64,000 nt of DNA from Ramazzottius varieornatus (taxonomy: Eukaryota; Animalia; Tardigrada), in the NCBI GenBank assembly GCA_001949185.1, contig BDGG01000007.1:1136730-1200729 (forward strand). The letters are read 5' to 3'. The translations under genes and the position numbers were made by a program. Shown here piece after piece: positions 50,415 to 62,303 of the stretch (position 1 is the stretch's first letter; every line of letters starts with the position of its first letter). Under the pieces are notes generated by a model, which was given only the letters and a program-made list of their open reading frames with translations, did no database searches and was not told the DNA's origin.

Positions 50415-53400
50415 TTCACTTCCCTCGTCCTCCCGTCCTCTCACCCCACTTCTAGCAGGCTCCTGGAGGTTTCGCGGACCACGTAAGGCTAGCCAGGTAC
50501 GTTTCTTGTACCTGGTGCTGTGGTCACAGAGTCTGCTGCGACGGGTATTCTTTCAGGTCCATCTGGTGTCAGCTCTCTCCCAATCAAGAATCAAGCAACC
50601 CCACTGGCATCAAATTTCCGCCTAAACAGCGGTGGCACCAAGGCTGTTTCTCACCACTCGTCCTTTGGTGGAAACATGGGGGAGCTTTTTGTGCATCATG
50701 CTATCCTGCAGGAAGCTCAGTTCTCCCTGCAGGTCTCCCTGTAAGTTTCCCTGTCGTTCAAGCACTATTCAGAGCCACCCCTTCGTTCTGTTGCTGTTTT
50801 CAGGCAACAACGGGGAAGATTGTTTTGTGGGTTCGGTCGTAGCAAAGAGGTAGGTTGCCCGTTGAACTCAAACTCACTCTGGCTATGGCAACAAGGAATG
50901 ACTTCAAGTGCGACTTGTGCGGGACTATCCTGTCAACAGCAGCATGGCTGGAAAGGTACAAGAACAACCAGACCTGCAGGAAGAAGGCAGTAAAACAGTC
51001 CAGCCAAGGGACTGTTTCGGCGGATGACGCTCAAGCTCGAGCTACGGTTCGGGGAAAGCTCCGAAGCACATTCCGTTCGGCCAGAACTCTACGCCGTATT
51101 CCAAAGGGTGCCAGATCGACTGCTGCTGCCGCTCTCTTGAAAGTCATCAGGGAATGTGTGCAGACAAACAGCCCGGAAACTTGGTGCGCGCTTCTAACCT
51201 TTCCGTCCACAGCATTTGCTCAGGCGGGCAAAGCTAGCAAAGGAGAGCAGTCGCTCACCTCAGTCGTCAAAGCCAACATTTCTCGTCCCCAAACCAGTGC
51301 AGTACCGCCGCTGAAACAGCATGCAAGGAAGAAACCTCCGGATGACGACGCCGCCATACGTAAGAGAGTAGAAGCCAAGTTGAATGAAGGCGACATCAGT
51401 GGAGCTGTTCGGACGTTAGCGTCAGAAGACTCGATAGCGCCGAGAAACACGAAAACGCTAGAGTCACTGATAAAGAAGCACCCAGCAGAGCAACCTGACG
51501 TCGATAACATGATCTTACCTGACGACCTGCCAGCGGCTAACATAGTCACGTCTGAAGAGATACGAAACGCCATCCTCAGCTTTCCGAATGGGTCGGCAGG
51601 TGGAGCAGACGGCCTACGCCCACAACACCTGAGAGATCTAACTTCAGGCCTGAGCGACGTCATGGCAGAGGAGATGCTGGAGGCGCTCGCGTCACTAGCG
51701 TCACTGTTGTTGAGCGGAAAGGTACCAGGGGAGGTCTGCCCCTTCCTGAAGGAGCGTCACTCATCGCTCTGACTAAGACGGCGGGATCCGTCACATTGCC
51801 GTCGGTTGCACTTTGCGACGCCTAGCAGGGACGGTGGTCAGCAAGCGAGTGATGCAACCGATGGGCGAACTGCTGCGGCCGGGGCAGGTCGGCTATGGCA
51901 CAAGGGGAGGTGCTGAAGCTGCAGTTCATTCGGCGCGCCTCTTCGTCACGCAGAATGAGAAAGATTGCAAGTTCTTCTCAAGCTAGACTTGAAGAACGCT
52001 TTTAACACTGTTTTTAGAGATAAACTGTTGTTAGAAGTTCAGAAATGCCTCCGACAATATTTCCTCTTCGTGTACCGGATGTACGGTCAACCATCAAACC
52101 TGTTCTACGGCCACCAGATTCTGTCGTCGGCCAGAGGCGTCCAACAAGGCGATCCCCTCGGACCACTCCTTTTCTGCCTAGTGACACGAGAACTCTCCAG
52201 ATCCCTCCAGTCGCCCAATTGTTGGTATCTGGATGATGCGACAGTTGGAGGGGATTTGGACATCTTCCTCGAAGACCTGCAGACGGTGATTGACCAGTGT
52301 GCCACCCTCGGCTTGGAGCTAAACATGTCCAAGTGTGAGATGTACATTTACGGAGGCAGCAAGAAAGAACAGGCGACCACAAAGTCCAATTTTCCCGAAG
52401 TTGGCTTTCCTGACGAATGCAGATCTGCTGCTTCTGGGTGCACCCATCCTGGAAGATGCTTTCCTTTCAATCTTCCAAGAAAAGACAGGACAAGCGGAAC
52501 TGATGGCAACGAGACTCGCGAAACACGGGACTCACCACGCCTTGTTCCTGCTAAAGAACGCGTTGTCCTTGCCAAAGCTTCTTTACATCTTACGTTGCAG
52601 CCCCGTCTGGAAGTTTTCTGCACTACTACGCAACTTCGACGAGGTTCTTCGAAGCAGTGTCGCCAGCATTACCAACGCCAAGATGACGGATTTAGTCTGG
52701 AGGCAAACTAGCTTACCAGTCGTAAAAAATGGCCTCGGCCTTCGCCCAGCAGAAGAGATAGCCCTTCCGGCCTATTTGGCCTCTATTTTTTCTGCGAAGC
52801 GTTTGGTAACGTCGATGGTCGCTGATTTCGACGTGGACAAGCTCTGTGCTGCCGAGCAGGCAGCGTGGGTTGAGCAGTCTGGTGTTGAACTGCCAATGCC
52901 TGAGCTGCGGGTCCACCAACGGTTGTGGGACCAGCCTATCGTTCAGAAGCACTTTTTCGCAGTCGTGGCTGCCTATTCTGAGTCGGAAGAAGAAACGGCT
53001 CGATTCCTCGCCGCTTCCACGACAGAGTCTGGTGCGTGGCTGAATGCGTTGCCGGCATCCTGTCCGGTCAACCTTCTCGACAACGACTCACTGCGCATTT
53101 CGATCGGTCTCAGGCTAGGAGCCCCGATCTGCGAACCTCACACATGTCGGTGCTCGGCTACGGTCGACATCCACGGGCGCCATGGTTTGAGCTGTAAGTA
53201 TTCCGCTGGCCGCCACAGCAGACACTTCTCCCTTAACGAGTCCTTGCGGTGTACTTTAGCCTCTTGTCAGGTCCAAGCCGTTCTGGAGCCGTCCTGCGGG
53301 ACGACTCTCAGAAAAGGCCAGACAGGATGACGCTGGTTCCTTGGAAGGAGGGCAAGGCGCTGGTGTGGGATGTGACCTGCGACGACTCTGTTTGCCAGAT

Positions 53401-53750: not shown

Positions 53751-56575
53751 TAGACTCAAAACTTCAGCTCCTCCGTTTCTGTCCTTCTCCGATCGTTTCT
53801 GTCTTCGGCGTTCCGTTCCGGAGGAGCTAGATATCCGTGAAGACCGAATGAAGCAACGGTTTGGGAGTCGAAATCAGGGAGATAAACACAAAACATCGGA
53901 GAAAACCAAACTTCGCGAAAGTGAAATAGCGTAACCGCTAATCAAGAACCAAGTTTAATTTAGCTTCACCTCCCTGTCGGGAGAAATTGCAGAACTGTCC
54001 GTATATTTTCATGTTTGTACTAATGCGACTCCAACCCATCAGGTTTACCTCGGCAAACGCACAGCATCACTGAGAAGCCGCTGGTTGGTGCGGCGTTCTC
54101 AGAAGAAACGTTATTTGATTTTAATGTGGATAAGGCTCATCCGAACCGGGGAGCCAAACTGAACGACTTTCCACCCAAAATAATTCACGACATGTAGAAC
54201 TAATTGGACGACTTTTAATATTGGTAGTGCAACCCAGAAAAGTATCAAAGCGGTCGAAATCAGACAGTGTGACCGATCTCATGCTATCATTATCATTTAC
54301 GTCACTACCACGTTTTTACTTCCGTGCACGTTACTCCCGCTAAACTCCATCGTTGCACATTGGCAGCTTCGTTAACACCTCCCCGTTTACACCAATTAGA
54401 ACTCTGTACTCACAACAGGGGGATGAAAGCCAGGCTCGATCGAGATATACCGTCGGTGAAAATACACCGATGCTGGAAAGCGTCTCCAGGACACAGAACT
54501 GGACAATTCAGATCACCGACTCCGCTTTGCACTGAATTTTCGGCGAAATATGGACAAGCATCCAGAGCTCGTCTATATTTCACCGACAACTTGGACAAGT
54601 TTTGCTCTTGGTCCTGTGACTGATTGTCCATGTTCTTTTCGTATTTCCCATTCTTCCGGGTATCTTGGATATTGTTCGAAGCTTCTATAATGTTTTACAC
54701 GAGGAAACATTTCTAAAACGTTTCGAAAACCTTGATATATAACGAGATGGATCAAAGCTGGGATCACTACACAGCACAGGCAATTTCGAGCGAACATGTT
54801 GGTTGTTTCCGAGCAAACGAGTCCCTATCCAGAAATTACCAGCGGTGTGTCGTACTGAGGCAAAGTATTTTCCATTTTATACTTCGCCTCAGCTCCTACA
54901 TTCGCGGGGGGCTTTCAACGACTCAGCCGGAGCTGATACGAAGCTTAGTCGAAACTCAGTCGAAGTTCAGTCGTTGTTTTATTCAGAGCCCAGACGAAGC
55001 TTCCGAACAGCTGCCAGCCGAAGCTGAGGCGAAATTCTTCTTAGACAACAGCGTAAAAAAGTTTCGGTATCGAAAAAAATCCAAGCGAAAGCAACCCTAG
55101 TTTCTGGAAAAATAGAACACAGTAATTTCAAAACAGGACACTGAAATCAACAAACCAAAATCAAGCTCAAAGGATACCAGACGTCCAGGGAAACAGTGTC
55201 GCGTCGACAAAAGAAACACTAAAGAAAACACGGGAACGTTCTGCAGTTCAGCGAAGGGATACTCGTTGGCTCCGACGACGCTGACGGTGTTCCAGTCTTT
55301 ATTAGATGTTCCCATGTGCCGAATACGCGACCTACAACAAGCCTGTCGTTGAGCGAAGATCGTCTTATCATCAGGGGACTGGGAGCATCAGGCATTGACT
55401 TACCCGTGAGTCAGGTTGGGAGTTCCCTTTCCGGTTTTCTACACATCCTCCATCCATCCCCAAAGCACCCTGTAGAAACAAAGACGAGACGGTTTAGCTG
55501 TTAACAAGATAAACAGGATAGATTGCCACGTTCAACCAAGAAAACGATCCGGGTCGAAGCTTTGTCGGGTTGACAGGCTGTGTTGAACTGGGCACGGCCT
55601 TGTCCTGCACACATGTGTGCGCCCAAGACGCTGTTGATCACTCTAGACAATCAGCAATCAGCCGAACGAAATCCCCCCATTTTGTCTCAACCTGTCTCTA
55701 TCAGGTAAGCGGACACCCGGAGGAAATGAACCTTACAGTTATCGAACAATTGGCCGTTGGTAGGTCACTGTGCCACCTTCAATGCACGGAGGGATCTGCG
55801 TCCCTCCCTGCACTACATCGACATTACGCCTCCTATCACCTTCCGCCAGTTTGGAGCAAATGGTCGATCGTTCGCCACGTTTGTGGTGACGAACCCAGCG
55901 GCCAACACTGTCATGTACCGTTTGGAAAAGGATGCAGAAAAGTATAGCCGGGTTTTCTGTGCAATTATTGTACTCTGGTCTGAGCTGAGGTCAAAAGCAT
56001 GATTTACATCGATGGCATCTTGCAGGTCGCTGTTCATTTCTCCTCGTTTCGGCGTCATGGAGCCCGGTGACCATCGCCTCATCGTAGCCTACCTTTCGTC
56101 ATGCCGGCCGAAGGCCCTCATATCGAAGGAGCTGTCCCTCGTACTGAACGATAACGAAGACAGTGATGCCACATTCCCCGTCCAGTTTCGCGCTTTCAAC
56201 GACTCGGAGATACGCGTCACTATGGCCGACACCTTGATCTTTCCCGACACCTTTCTGAATTTGACGTCGCAGCTACCGTTTGAGCTATCTAGTGGTTCGG
56301 CGTTCCCTTTGAGGTACAAGTGGTACGTCCTCGATACGGTCGGACGGTACCTGCAAGTGTCGCCCTCTAGTGGACTTCTCATCAGCCATGATAGTCTGGA
56401 CTTTACCTTTACCTTCAAGCCGTATGCGGTACAGACGTATCAAACGGATTTGGTGTTGCGAGTGACGGCTCCTAACGCCAACTTTCTGTCACTTCGCCTG
56501 TCCGTCACGGCAAAAGGAACTCTCGGCCATTTGTCGGTAAGACACTCATCCCACACGTACAATAGGAAATTATAG

Positions 56576-56748
56576 TACAGTAAAAATTATGGGACAGGCG
56601 CAGAAGACGGCAACATGCTAAATCCGGCCGTAGAAAAGTGTCGAAAAGTGTGTTACTGTGAATCGGTCGCGTGCGTGCTTCCATACCGCCGTACCGAAAA
56701 GGCCTGTGCCATCCTTTTTACTGTCCCATAATTTCTCATCGTTAGTAT
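56576..56748. mobile_element. MITE relic (family of 35657-35834) in CFAP65 intron
   Basis: Shared GTAAAAATTATGGG and CCGTAGAAAAGTGTCGAAAAGTGT cores; mirrored TGTCCCATAATTT. Confidence 0.65.
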
Positions 56749-56884
56749 ACTTTAAATTATTATGAGCCATTCCAACTCTGTGAATGCAACGGTAAAATTA
56801 GACACATTTTAGAAATCACTTAAAAATCACTTGAGCTAAAAGCAGGTTGAAAGGAAGACTTTGACTTTGTAAAAGGAAAGATTG

Positions 56885-57334
56885 TTAATAGGATTGGCAT
56901 TTGCCTTGGGCCTTGAGCTGGTCAACGACGGCTTGGAAAGCGTCGTTGTCTGCTCGTTGTCTGGAGCTCCTGCAGTTTGCGTTGGTTTCGGCTGTGGGGC
57001 ATCGCAGGTGGGTCTTGTAGGTCCACTCCCACTTGCAGATTTGGGTGGCTCGTCGAAAACTGCAGGGCTGTCCGCAGACGGTGCCGTAGGCGGTGTTGCC
57101 GATGAGGCCAGAAACTTGTCCCAGTCCAAGGATCAGTCCAGCAGTGCTGATCGTCACCGCAAAGCTTCGGCTTGCCATGTTTGATGGATTTGCCATCTCT
57201 GGACTGTAGTCTCCTCCAACTCTACCATCCTCTTGTACAGCCACTGCGTTATGGACAGCGGCCTCGTTGTACCTGGCGAACGAGCTTCCAAACAGACATA
57301 CGGCCAGAAGAGCAGCGAGAAGCTTAGGGGCCAT
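56885..57334 (-). CDS. ALF: Anti-lipopolysaccharide factor (ALF)-like secreted protein, 149 aa, nested antisense in a CFAP65 intron
   Basis: Signal peptide MAPKLLAALLAVCLFGSSFA. GQPC-x20-CP loop (CSFRRATQICKWEWTYKTHLRCP) has ALF spacing and the W/Y/K pattern. Amphipathic C-terminal helix AFQAVVDQLKAQG. Confidence 0.78.
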   Translation of the reverse strand: MAPKLLAALLAVCLFGSSFARYNEAAVHNAVAVQEDGRVGGDYSPEMANPSNMASRSFAVTISTAGLILGLGQVSGLIGNTAYGTVCGQPCSFRRATQICKWEWTYKTHLRCPTAETNANCRSSRQRADNDAFQAVVDQLKAQGKCQSY

Positions 57335-57420: not shown

Positions 57421-57427
57421 TTTTATA
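57421..57427 (-). promoter_or_regulatory. Candidate TATA box of the ALF-like gene
   Basis: TATAAAA on the minus strand ~90 bp upstream of the ATG. Confidence 0.4.
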
Positions 57428-57428
57428 C

Positions 57429-57756
57429 AGGCTTGACTTTATCTTATCCGTAATGTTCCGCTCAACTGACCCCGTAACAATGTCGAGCCAACAGGATCGG
57501 CTGGTTGATAGGCGCCTGACCGAACAACCAAGCGTGCGTTATCCCGATGTGGCGGACACAGCGCCCANNNNNNNNNNNNNNNNNNNNNNNNNNNNNNNNN
57601 NNNNNNNNNNNNNNNNNTGGGCGCTGTGTCCGCCACATCGGGATAACGCACGCTTGGTTGTTCGGTCAGGCGCCTATCAACCAGCCGATCCTGTTGGCTC
57701 GACATTGTTACGGGGGCAGTTGAGCGGAACATTACGGATAAGATAAAGTCAAGCCT
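57429..57756. repeat. Near-perfect palindrome (139 bp arms around a 49-N gap); foldback element or assembly artefact
   Basis: 57429-57567 is the reverse complement of 57617-57756 apart from about one difference. Confidence 0.8.
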
Positions 57757-58019: not shown

Positions 58020-58931
58020 ATTATTTTCACAAAACTTTCTCGTTACGCGCCGGTATCTCAATACTTCGTTGGAAAGCCCCGGTTACCTTTCACCTTCTGA
58101 AGTCGGTTTGGAATGGATCGGACCAACTTTGCGCAGATTGCCGGATCCATCCCATACCAGATTTCCTTGACGGTTCCTTCCAGCTCTTCCAGGTTCGAAG
58201 GATGTCTTTCTTTCAGCTATTCCTTGACTTCAGACCACAAATGCTCGATAGGGTTGAGGTCCGGTGAATAGGGAGCCCACTCCAACACTTTAAGCTTCGT
58301 TTCAACGATCCAAGCTCGGGCAACGAAGGAAGTATGTTTGGGATCGTTGTCGTGCGGGTAATGCCATCCCTTCTTCAAATTCAGTTTTTTCGCCGACTGT
58401 AGCACGTTCTTGTCCATAATGTCTCGATACATGGGCCCATTCATATTTCCATTGATTACAGCCAAATTTCCCACACCTTTTGCGCTGAAACATCCCCAAA
58501 ACATCAGCCGACCGCCGCCATGCTTTACTGTTGGTACCGTGCAACTTGGCGCACATTCCTCACCCGGCTTTCTCCACACTCTCACCATTCCGTCCGACCC
58601 GAACAAGTTGATTTTGGTCTCGTCCGACCACAGCACGTTATCCCAAAAAGTTTGTGGCTTTTTCCCGTACCGCATGACGAATTTCAGACGCTTCATTCTG
58701 CTGGCATAGCACACCGGTCCGATCAATAATAGCCGTGGTCTTCCGAATCGGTCCCGGCCGCCGCTTCACCTCCGCTGATCCAGTCTTCTCGAACTTTTCG
58801 ATCATACTTCGAACTGTACTTCTTGGAAGACATGCTCGGCGAGCTATTTCACTGGCTCCCACGTGATTCCGATGGTGGTAAATCACAAGTTTTCGAATTT
58901 CAAGAGGGTGTTCAGATCTCGGGGGAGACAT
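58020..58931 (-). mobile_element. Tc1-family DD34E transposase, frameshifted
   Basis: HTH N-terminus, WSDETKINLFG, TVKHGGG.LMFWGCF, HDNDPKHTS, SPDLNPIEHLW. TIRs not identified. Confidence 0.9.
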
Positions 58932-60403: not shown

Positions 60404-62303
60404 TAGTGATGGGTGTCAATCAAACCATTAGTTATACCGGTGCTGTAGTCTACTGGCTGGATGACGTACTGTACTGCGCGGAACCATCGAGGGAAAACAG
60501 TACACCCACAACAAAATACAACATAGTTTAGGCACAAACAGAATTGGAATTACAATACCTGCGCCAAACTGAAATTTTTGTTGGATGCTCAAGCCGAACC
60601 AACAAGGGTTGATTGGCTGGATCCGACTGTTGAGTCGGCTTTCCTATTTCCAACAGATGCCCGCAACTGGATTTAATTTTCACAACGAATGTCGAAAGAC
60701 GCCGGTGACTTATACCTTCCAAATACGCAATGATAACAACTTCCGGATTCGTTGCCGCCTCACTGCTGATATTGTGCTGCCGGAAGGTTGCTCCCAGCGT
60801 GTTACTCTCTGCTCGGCCAGCGCCGATCCACACCCGCATTTTCACCACTCGGCGATACGGTATGTACTACAGTCAATATTATTACAACTGCCATTTTCAC
60901 GGGCTTTCAATGTCAAATACCTCTTTCCAGGATGTCGCGCGAGGACGATGTGTTTGATCTACCGGCTTCCACTCACGAAGATGTCAACTTGACCTTCTGG
61001 GCCGAACACTGCAGTACCAGCCAATACCACCTGTATTCGGAAGCCTTGTCCAGCCATCCTTCCATGCAAGTCAAGCGCATCGGAACGATCAAGCTTCAAG
61101 TCAGCCAGCCGATTTGCCAAGTGGTGGACCTGGTGGGCAGCGGTAGTATGCGAGTCTACGGAAAGGAACGCCTGTGGCGGCTGTTACACATCAGCCAGCT
61201 CAACAACCTCTTGGCCTTGCCTGCTGACGACCAGCAAGACCTACTGTCCAACGTCTTGAGCTACAAAGGCCGTACCGTCCTGCAGATCAAATGCTCTTCT
61301 CAGGTCGATATTTCACTAGGAGCGGCTGTTCTTGGCCAGGCTGGAACTGTCCGCTTGGCTCTGCACAATGACAGGGGACCAGTGTGTCATTGGAAAGTTG
61401 TGCATTTGACTGATCTGGAAATCAAAGTCAAGGAAATTTCACCCATATCCCAATTGCCGGAAGAATATGTAAGGCAAAGTCATGTCCACTTAAATTCATG
61501 GCCGTGCTTAACCTTGTACGTGTCGACAGCTAATTCTACGGAAGAAAAAGCTGATCAGCATTTCACCGTCGCACGGCTCCATCAGCGAAGGTTCCACGTC
61601 CACCATCGAGCTGCAGTGCAGCCATGCCCAAGTGGGCGAGTTTTTATTGCCCTTCTTCCTCCAGATCGATAAGGGCAAACTCATCCTGATTCGCGCATCT
61701 TGTCAAACTCTAGCACCAACCCAGGCCGGACTGGTGATCTGCCGCAACGAACTACGATTCTTCCCGTCACCTCTTTCTTCCAAGAACGTCCGCATTGAAA
61801 TGTGCGAAATGTACAACCCGACCCTGCACAAGATCAACTTTCAGGCCACTCTAAACCGACACAACAAGACGAGCGGCGAATCGGACTATGCGCAGGGGAC
61901 CAACAAGGATAAAACCCATCAAGAGTTGCACCAAGTTCAGGATGACGTCTTTCACATTTTGAACTGGAAAGGACAGATTGGACCGCAGTCCTTCGCTGTC
62001 ATAGCATTCACCTTCAAGCCACAGCACTTGACTTTTTCGGAGGTAAGAACGAAGAACGAAGAAAGCGGGTTTAGCTCTCGTTGAAACTGATGACAAAAGT
62101 TCAATATTTAACAGAGGCACTGCACGATCAAAATCCACAACGAGCGAGAGTACGTTGTCAGGCTGTGCGGCAAAGGCTGTTCATTGAAACACTTCGTGAA
62201 GACGGCGCCAACAGTTGAGCCTTCCATCCAGCCGGTGGTTGACTGGCTTCTTCCCGAAACCAACGTAGGCAGGCCTTTATGGCCAATCATCCTCATTGCG
62301 CTA

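Follow-up and report, generated by a model that had tools for sequence, protein, structure and literature searches.

The window analysed here is a 64,000-nt stretch of the Ramazzottius varieornatus genome (C7:1136730-1200729; the assembly comprises 55.8 Mb and 200 contigs), and the feature of interest is a small gene on its minus strand, at 56885-57334. We call this gene ALF-like after the anti-lipopolysaccharide factors (ALFs), antibacterial proteins of shrimps, crabs and horseshoe crabs that its predicted product resembles. The open reading frame runs from an ATG at 57334 to a TAA at 56885-56887, and its translation gave a protein of 149 amino acids with no internal stop codon. Because a homologue of the same length, P0002 (149 aa), could be aligned with this protein from end to end, one exon suffices to encode a complete ALF-like protein, and the intact single-exon coding sequence reported in a preliminary description of this DNA was confirmed.

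The predicted protein begins with a signal peptide (residues 1-20; 57275-57334; this and the following protein features are all on the minus strand), which has a basic n-region and a Leu/Ala-rich core and is kept in P0002 and in a further homologue, P0007. Using the -3/-1 rule, we placed the probable cleavage site after S-F-A, with small residues at positions -3 and -1. The signal peptide is followed by an acidic spacer of 36 residues (residues 21-56; 57167-57274), a putative propeptide with a net charge of -2, a pI of 4.9 and the dipeptide SR at its end. The remaining 93 residues (57-149; 56888-57166) form a cationic ALF-like domain with a pI of 9.1 and six cysteines that are invariant among the homologues. 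A hydrophobic segment of 23 residues near the start of the domain (residues 58-80; 57095-57163; FAVTISTAGLILGLGQVSGLIGN) was aligned with helix alpha-1 of ALFs; it was not resolved in our own AlphaFold models. Translation thus bore out the signal peptide, the acidic region of about 35 residues ending in SR and the hydrophobic segment listed in the preliminary description.

Within the domain, the Cys91-x20-Cys112 loop (56999-57064) is the likely counterpart of the LPS-binding beta-hairpin of ALFs. It reads G-Q-P-C91, then the 20 residues SFRRATQICKWEWTYKTHLR, then C112-P, with a net charge of +4 and four aromatic residues, matching the G-x-x-C-x20-C-P pattern with a cationic and aromatic loop that had been described. 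Four further cysteines, previously noted from their contexts VC, IC, NC and KC, were located at C87, C100, C121 and C146, respectively; C87 lies just ahead of the hairpin and C100 inside it, and C121 and C146 flank a predicted C-terminal helix (residues 121-142; 56909-56974). The helix, also part of the earlier account, was assigned by DSSP on low-confidence AlphaFold models; in the alignment with the shrimp ALF structure 2JOB, it falls on the helical part at the C-terminal end.

A TATAAAA motif on the minus strand at 57421-57427, 93 nt 5' of the ATG, is a candidate TATA box and is the same in a second copy of the gene (the twin copy described below). Two bases upstream of this motif begins a long palindrome (57429-57756, no strand assigned), whose two arms are 99% complementary and flank an assembly gap of Ns. 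The arms had no other locus in the genome, and there is an assembly gap at the matching spot in the twin copy. Each palindrome arm also contains GATAAG/AGATAA motifs. On the 3' side of the gene, the nearest polyadenylation-like signal is an AATAAT on the minus strand (56756-56761), and a 41-nt inverted repeat (56559-56599 and 56702-56742; 80% complementary, 102 nt between the arms) lies about 140-325 nt 3' of the stop codon.

The ALF-like gene is nested in antisense orientation between exons of a CFAP65-like gene. A CFAP65-like Ig-domain exon is present on the plus strand at 56012-56537 (PF24507, 31.5 bits; PF25249, 27 bits) and is followed by a GTAAGA donor with its GT at 56538, and the next CFAP65-like coding stretches, also on the plus strand, lie at 60788-62084 (PF24816, 30.8 bits; PF24291). 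The intron between these exons contains, besides the ALF-like gene and the palindrome with its gap, a fragment of a DDE_3 transposase (58217-58726, minus strand; PF13358, 44.9 bits), from which ~145 bp have been deleted in comparison with the twin copy. A reverse-transcriptase fragment (RVT_1, identified with Pfam) lies upstream on the plus strand at 51965-52711. With CFAP65 exons on both sides and the DDE_3 and RVT_1 remnants nearby, the previously proposed position in an antisense intron among transposon debris was upheld.

Gene copies and homologues

A protein identical to the window protein is encoded at C7:1883196-1883642. The coding sequences of these twin copies differ at only 3 of 450 nt (window positions 57140, 57215 and 57290); all three differences fall in third codon positions and all three are synonymous, whereas the flanks of the two genes show about 1-2% divergence as well as indels. 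Both copies lie within an inverted segmental duplication of 9.65 kb with about 98% identity, which pairs the sequence from window position 55671 (C7:1192400) to C7:1202047, ~1.3 kb past the window end, with C7:1875356-1884869. The duplicated segment comprises the ALF-like gene, the 3' exons of CFAP65 and transposon fragments, and its two copies are 690 kb apart on one scaffold; it may be either a true duplication or an assembly artefact.

The preliminary description had called the surrounding gene a decaying host gene, and the CFAP65 copy in the window is indeed incomplete. The upstream CFAP65 Ig exons, however, were found only beside the twin copy, at C7:1884982-1887537 (the best match being PF24507, 70 bits, at C7:1885968-1886192), and none is present in the window upstream of 55671. 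The window CFAP65 stretch is therefore most simply read, from the arrangement of these sequences, as a partial duplicate lacking the 5' part rather than as a gene decaying in place. The twin ALF-like gene occupies the same nested position within an apparently more complete CFAP65 gene.

A third paralogue on the minus strand of the same scaffold (C7:519513-519846) has decayed. It still has a recognisable signal peptide, spacer and C-terminal helix, but a deletion of ~101 nt eliminated the Cys hairpin entirely and caused a frameshift. Searches of the genome with the family profile, with the Hypsibius protein and with a degenerate DNA pattern for C-[KR]-W-x-x-T-Y-K yielded no paralogues other than the two copies and this relic. 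A search of the genome with PF11630 gave no candidates and missed the window gene itself as well, so that this negative carries no weight.

Relatives of the window protein were recovered by several routes. A word-index search found P0002, which is 50% identical to the window protein over its full length, and P0003, a close relative that is frameshifted; P0007 was found by a profile-seeded word search. A profile search of 1.84 billion representative proteins found P0004, which matches over the cysteine domain with an E of 1.5e-9 and corresponds to BV898_06250 of Hypsibius exemplaris. Used as a query in turn, P0004 finds the ALF-like gene in the Ramazzottius genome at an E of 7.4e-10. Another H. 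exemplaris protein, P0006 (BV898_06245), is encoded on the same scaffold as BV898_06250, five locus-tag numbers away, and is 68% identical to it. In BV898_06245 the segment before the cysteine domain is internally duplicated, with EEVRATGIVEAVI...QVIGTRWRD occurring twice, and the duplication involves the hydrophobic N-terminal segment. One further candidate, P0005, a 334-aa bacterial-type repeat protein (E 6.6e-6), was discarded as spurious: it aligns solely with the spacer and the hydrophobic segment, and the cysteine pattern is absent from it. Metagenome contigs scanned with the family alignment contained no relatives.

We aligned five proteins (the window protein, P0002, P0007, P0004 and P0006). 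Across this alignment, in which identity goes down to 27%, none of the six domain cysteines varies, the x20 spacing is constant and the motifs Q-I-C, T-Y-K-T and G-K are fully kept; the Pro after the second loop Cys is not family-wide, other members having D or S. A full-length open reading frame with the invariant cysteines is kept across species at 41-50% identity. Every member has an anionic spacer (32-56 aa; charge -2 to -7) and, after it, a cationic domain with a charge between +3 and +8, and in all five the loop has a charge of +3 to +5 and three or four aromatic residues. In four members the domain boundary has an R or K no more than three positions away, and in P0004 no more than five. 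Both the additional cysteines and the acidic spacer, which the preliminary description had seen in a single protein, are thus conserved family traits according to the five-protein alignment and a charge script. The two Hypsibius proteins have the six cysteines, the x20 loop and the anionic spacer in common with the window protein, along with Q-I-C-[KR]-W and T-Y-K-T, at an identity of about 27-29% overall and 39% across the domain. Since the six cysteines and the loop length of 20 residues hold down to 27% identity, and since the differences between the twin copies are synonymous, the pattern goes beyond what chance would produce.

Relation to the ALF/scygonadin family

The sole Pfam match of the window protein was PF11630 (Anti-LPS-SCYG), at residues 84-143, with a score of 19.5 bits (E 1.2e-3) that lies below the curated gathering cut-off of 25 bits. 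PF11630 was nevertheless the top or only Pfam match in all five family members, scoring 19.5 bits in P0002, 14.7 in P0007, 24.5 in P0006 and 27.1 in P0004. The P0004 match, the one above the cut-off, starts in the hydrophobic segment and spans 74 of the 100 model positions (7-80). Since the window protein's own score is sub-threshold and that of its homologue P0004 is above threshold, membership of the window protein in PF11630 is transitive. The profile match that had been proposed as a check on ALF identity was accordingly obtained with the Hypsibius homologue (27.1 bits against 25), but the window protein, at 19.5 bits, falls short of it.

We also compared a profile of the five proteins with 177,635 distinct PDB sequences and obtained a single match at E <= 10, to 2JOB_A (shrimp ALF-Pm3), whose E of 0.11 is not significant taken singly. 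In this alignment, profile positions 64-144 correspond to 2JOB residues 14-89, C91 and C112 fall on both ALF cysteines, and the aligned region also takes in the hydrophobic segment on the N-terminal side and the helical part on the C-terminal side. A PDB search with the window sequence by itself had returned two other types of protein, neither of which was retained. One was an SRCR-like match to PIT54 (E 0.1), in which residues 77-102 (L-I-G-N-T-A-Y-G-T-V-C-G-Q-P-C-S-F-R-R-A-T-Q-I-C-K-W) resemble the motif W-G-T-V-C-D-x-x-W-D-x-x-x-A-x-V-V-C-[RK], probably by chance; the other was a set of antifungal proteins from fungi (E 0.66 to 2.6). Both disappeared when the family profile was used and Pfam gave no SRCR match, so we rejected the SRCR and antifungal readings.

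Structure prediction gave mixed results. The ESM Atlas models the window protein at a pLDDT of 0.60, and the structure cluster nearest to this model was 'Anti-lipopolysaccharide factor', with query and target TM scores of 0.64 and 0.51, respectively, over 81 residues (positions 62-149); the nearest structure cluster for the Atlas model of P0007 carried the same name (TM 0.45/0.51). The nearest Atlas feature clusters of these two proteins also carry PF11630, at scores of 0.76-0.83 that fall in the range the tool describes as 'a lead only'. AlphaFold2 models built on alignments of two and five sequences had mean pLDDT values of 38.9 and 40.5, respectively, and no residue of the five-sequence model reached 70. 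A Foldseek search of the PDB with the five-sequence model (mean pLDDT 40.5) found no match at E <= 0.001.

No single one of these lines is decisive; the reading best supported by the sequence comparisons and the models together is that the window protein is distantly homologous to the ALF/scygonadin family. The ALF-like identity given in the preliminary description therefore stands as distant homology, as indicated by PF11630, 2JOB and the Atlas neighbours, but not as strict family membership (19.5 against 25 bits).

The published characteristics of ALFs allowed us to place the tardigrade family more closely. ALFs have two conserved cysteines that form one disulfide and flank a central 20-residue hairpin rich in charged residues, and their fold consists of three helices on a four-stranded sheet (PMC6213531). 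The window protein has this feature of authentic ALFs, two Cys around a 20-residue charged loop, and the charge and aromatic residues of the tardigrade loop agree with the published LPS-binding hairpin (PMC6213531). Like ALF-Pm3 (2JOB) and the Limulus/Tachypleus ALF, it is small and predicted to be secreted, with a hydrophobic segment, a G-x-x-C-x20-C loop and C-terminal helices. Sequence likeness between ALFs and the tardigrade family is at the profile level only, and the host phylum here is Tardigrada.

The differences from authentic ALFs concern the precursor, the cysteines and the gene. In the ALF precursor, nothing separates the leader from the mature peptide (PMC6213531), whereas in the tardigrade family 32-56 aa of anionic spacer come between the signal peptide and the domain. 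Authentic ALFs have two cysteines and the tardigrade family six invariant ones, one of them within the hairpin. Shrimp ALF genes consist of three exons and two introns, with the beta-sheet encoded by exon 2 (PMC6213531), in contrast to the one coding exon of the window gene. The wider ALF/scygonadin family also includes the shrimp MjALF-E1 group and the crab scygonadins, some of which have extra cysteines (PMC6213531), and in phylogenies the ALF-related proteins with three and four cysteines and the scygonadins fall outside the authentic ALF clade (PMC6213531). From their descriptions, scygonadins, which are anionic and have 17 residues between the cysteines, are set apart from the tardigrade family, as are the ALF-related penaeid proteins, with three or four cysteines against six. 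Since precursor layout, cysteine number and exon structure all differ, we did not file the tardigrade family as authentic ALFs; on the sequence comparisons, we file it as a variant within the ALF/scygonadin superfamily.

Interpretation and possible role

We conclude, with a probability that we put at roughly 0.7, that the open reading frame is a real, selectively maintained gene for a presumably secreted pre(pro)protein that ends in a cationic domain of 93 aa distantly homologous to the arthropod ALF/scygonadin fold. In the mechanism that we propose from homology, the protein would be secreted after removal of its signal peptide, and the anionic spacer might mask or neutralise the cationic domain or aid its folding until, possibly, it is clipped off next to the R or K close to where the domain starts. 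The cationic and aromatic 20-residue beta-hairpin, closed by a disulfide, would then bind anionic microbial lipids or glycans such as LPS or lipoteichoic acid, as in ALFs, and this binding could damage or neutralise bacteria. Pairing of the other four invariant cysteines would probably add two disulfides, stapling the C-terminal helices to the sheet. What the analysis itself establishes is that the gene is intact and conserved, together with its architecture and its link to the family; secretion, propeptide cleavage, the disulfide pattern, microbial-surface binding and antibacterial function are inferred.

An ALF-type fold could also serve outside immunity, and the gene might encode a secreted structural, reproductive or signalling factor (of the cuticle, the egg or the seminal fluid, for instance) that has a common ancestry with ALFs. 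The homology is distant, and the probable extra disulfides and the spacer distinguish the tardigrade family; moreover, scygonadins belong to PF11630 too, and an anionic character is known for several groups of shrimp ALFs (PMC6213531). We nonetheless consider a non-immune role unlikely: the hairpin is cationic and aromatic in all five members, a character linked to microbial-surface binding, and lineage-specific duplication and loss, as seen in the twin copy, the relic and the two adjacently numbered Hypsibius genes, is typical of immune effectors.

Less probable still is that the family consists of unrelated, tardigrade-specific cysteine-rich secreted proteins in which the C-x20-C spacing and the weak ALF matches arose by convergence or chance. 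The sub-threshold Pfam score of the window protein, the E of 0.11 for 2JOB, the AlphaFold and Foldseek results (pLDDT 39-40), which give the ALF fold no support, and the SRCR (E 0.1) and antifungal (E 0.66 to 2.6) matches of the single-sequence search would all fit such an origin. Against it, five diverged members choose PF11630 and one of them passes the cut-off across 74 of the 100 model positions, the family profile drops the SRCR and antifungal matches and leaves 2JOB alone in the PDB, and two separate Atlas models place the ALF cluster first by structure. That the open reading frame is non-functional, a chance survivor within an intron of a duplicated gene fragment, is very hard to credit even with transposon fragments around it, a truncated CFAP65 copy and a decayed paralogue on the same scaffold, given its full-length conservation across species (41-50% identity, with invariant cysteines), the intact state of both copies with 3/3 differences synonymous against flanks that are 1-2% divergent and carry indels, and the TATA-like motif 93 nt 5' of the ATG.

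The preferred reading, a gene for a secreted, distantly ALF-related protein, bears on a lineage in which ALFs had been described beforehand as little known. Our search supported this: in the searchable literature no ALFs are reported for tardigrades (PMC6213531; PMC5437397), no paper joins tardigrades or Hypsibius with ALFs, and BV898_06250 and BV898_06245 are nowhere mentioned. A survey of tardigrade immunity left open whether antimicrobial peptides are present in these animals (PMC7056985). Both Hypsibius proteins are annotated merely as 'hypothetical protein', and in the protein collection BV898_06250 already has a precomputed, automatic assignment to PF11630. The link between tardigrades and ALFs has therefore been visible in databases, yet undescribed. 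With the Pfam assignment of the Hypsibius protein pre-existing and function proposed by analogy, we grade our claim as modest.

A bolder proposal, which we regard as possible but rather doubtful, is that the ALF fold did not originate in crustaceans and horseshoe crabs but is an ancient panarthropod (or older) immune effector and that the tardigrade form is a three-disulfide zymogen, with an anionic pro-region and a cationic mature domain, activated by cleavage. If true, this would be the first identified tardigrade antimicrobial effector family and would provide a handle on the steps downstream of the reduced Toll/Imd pathways. The occurrence of an ALF-related family in two tardigrade genera would place the origin of the fold at or before the panarthropod ancestor, or else represent a striking convergence. 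Such a family would offer a variant, naturally triple-disulfide by our prediction, of a scaffold that has already been mined for anti-endotoxin peptides, and it would give tardigrade immunology its first concrete effector candidate.
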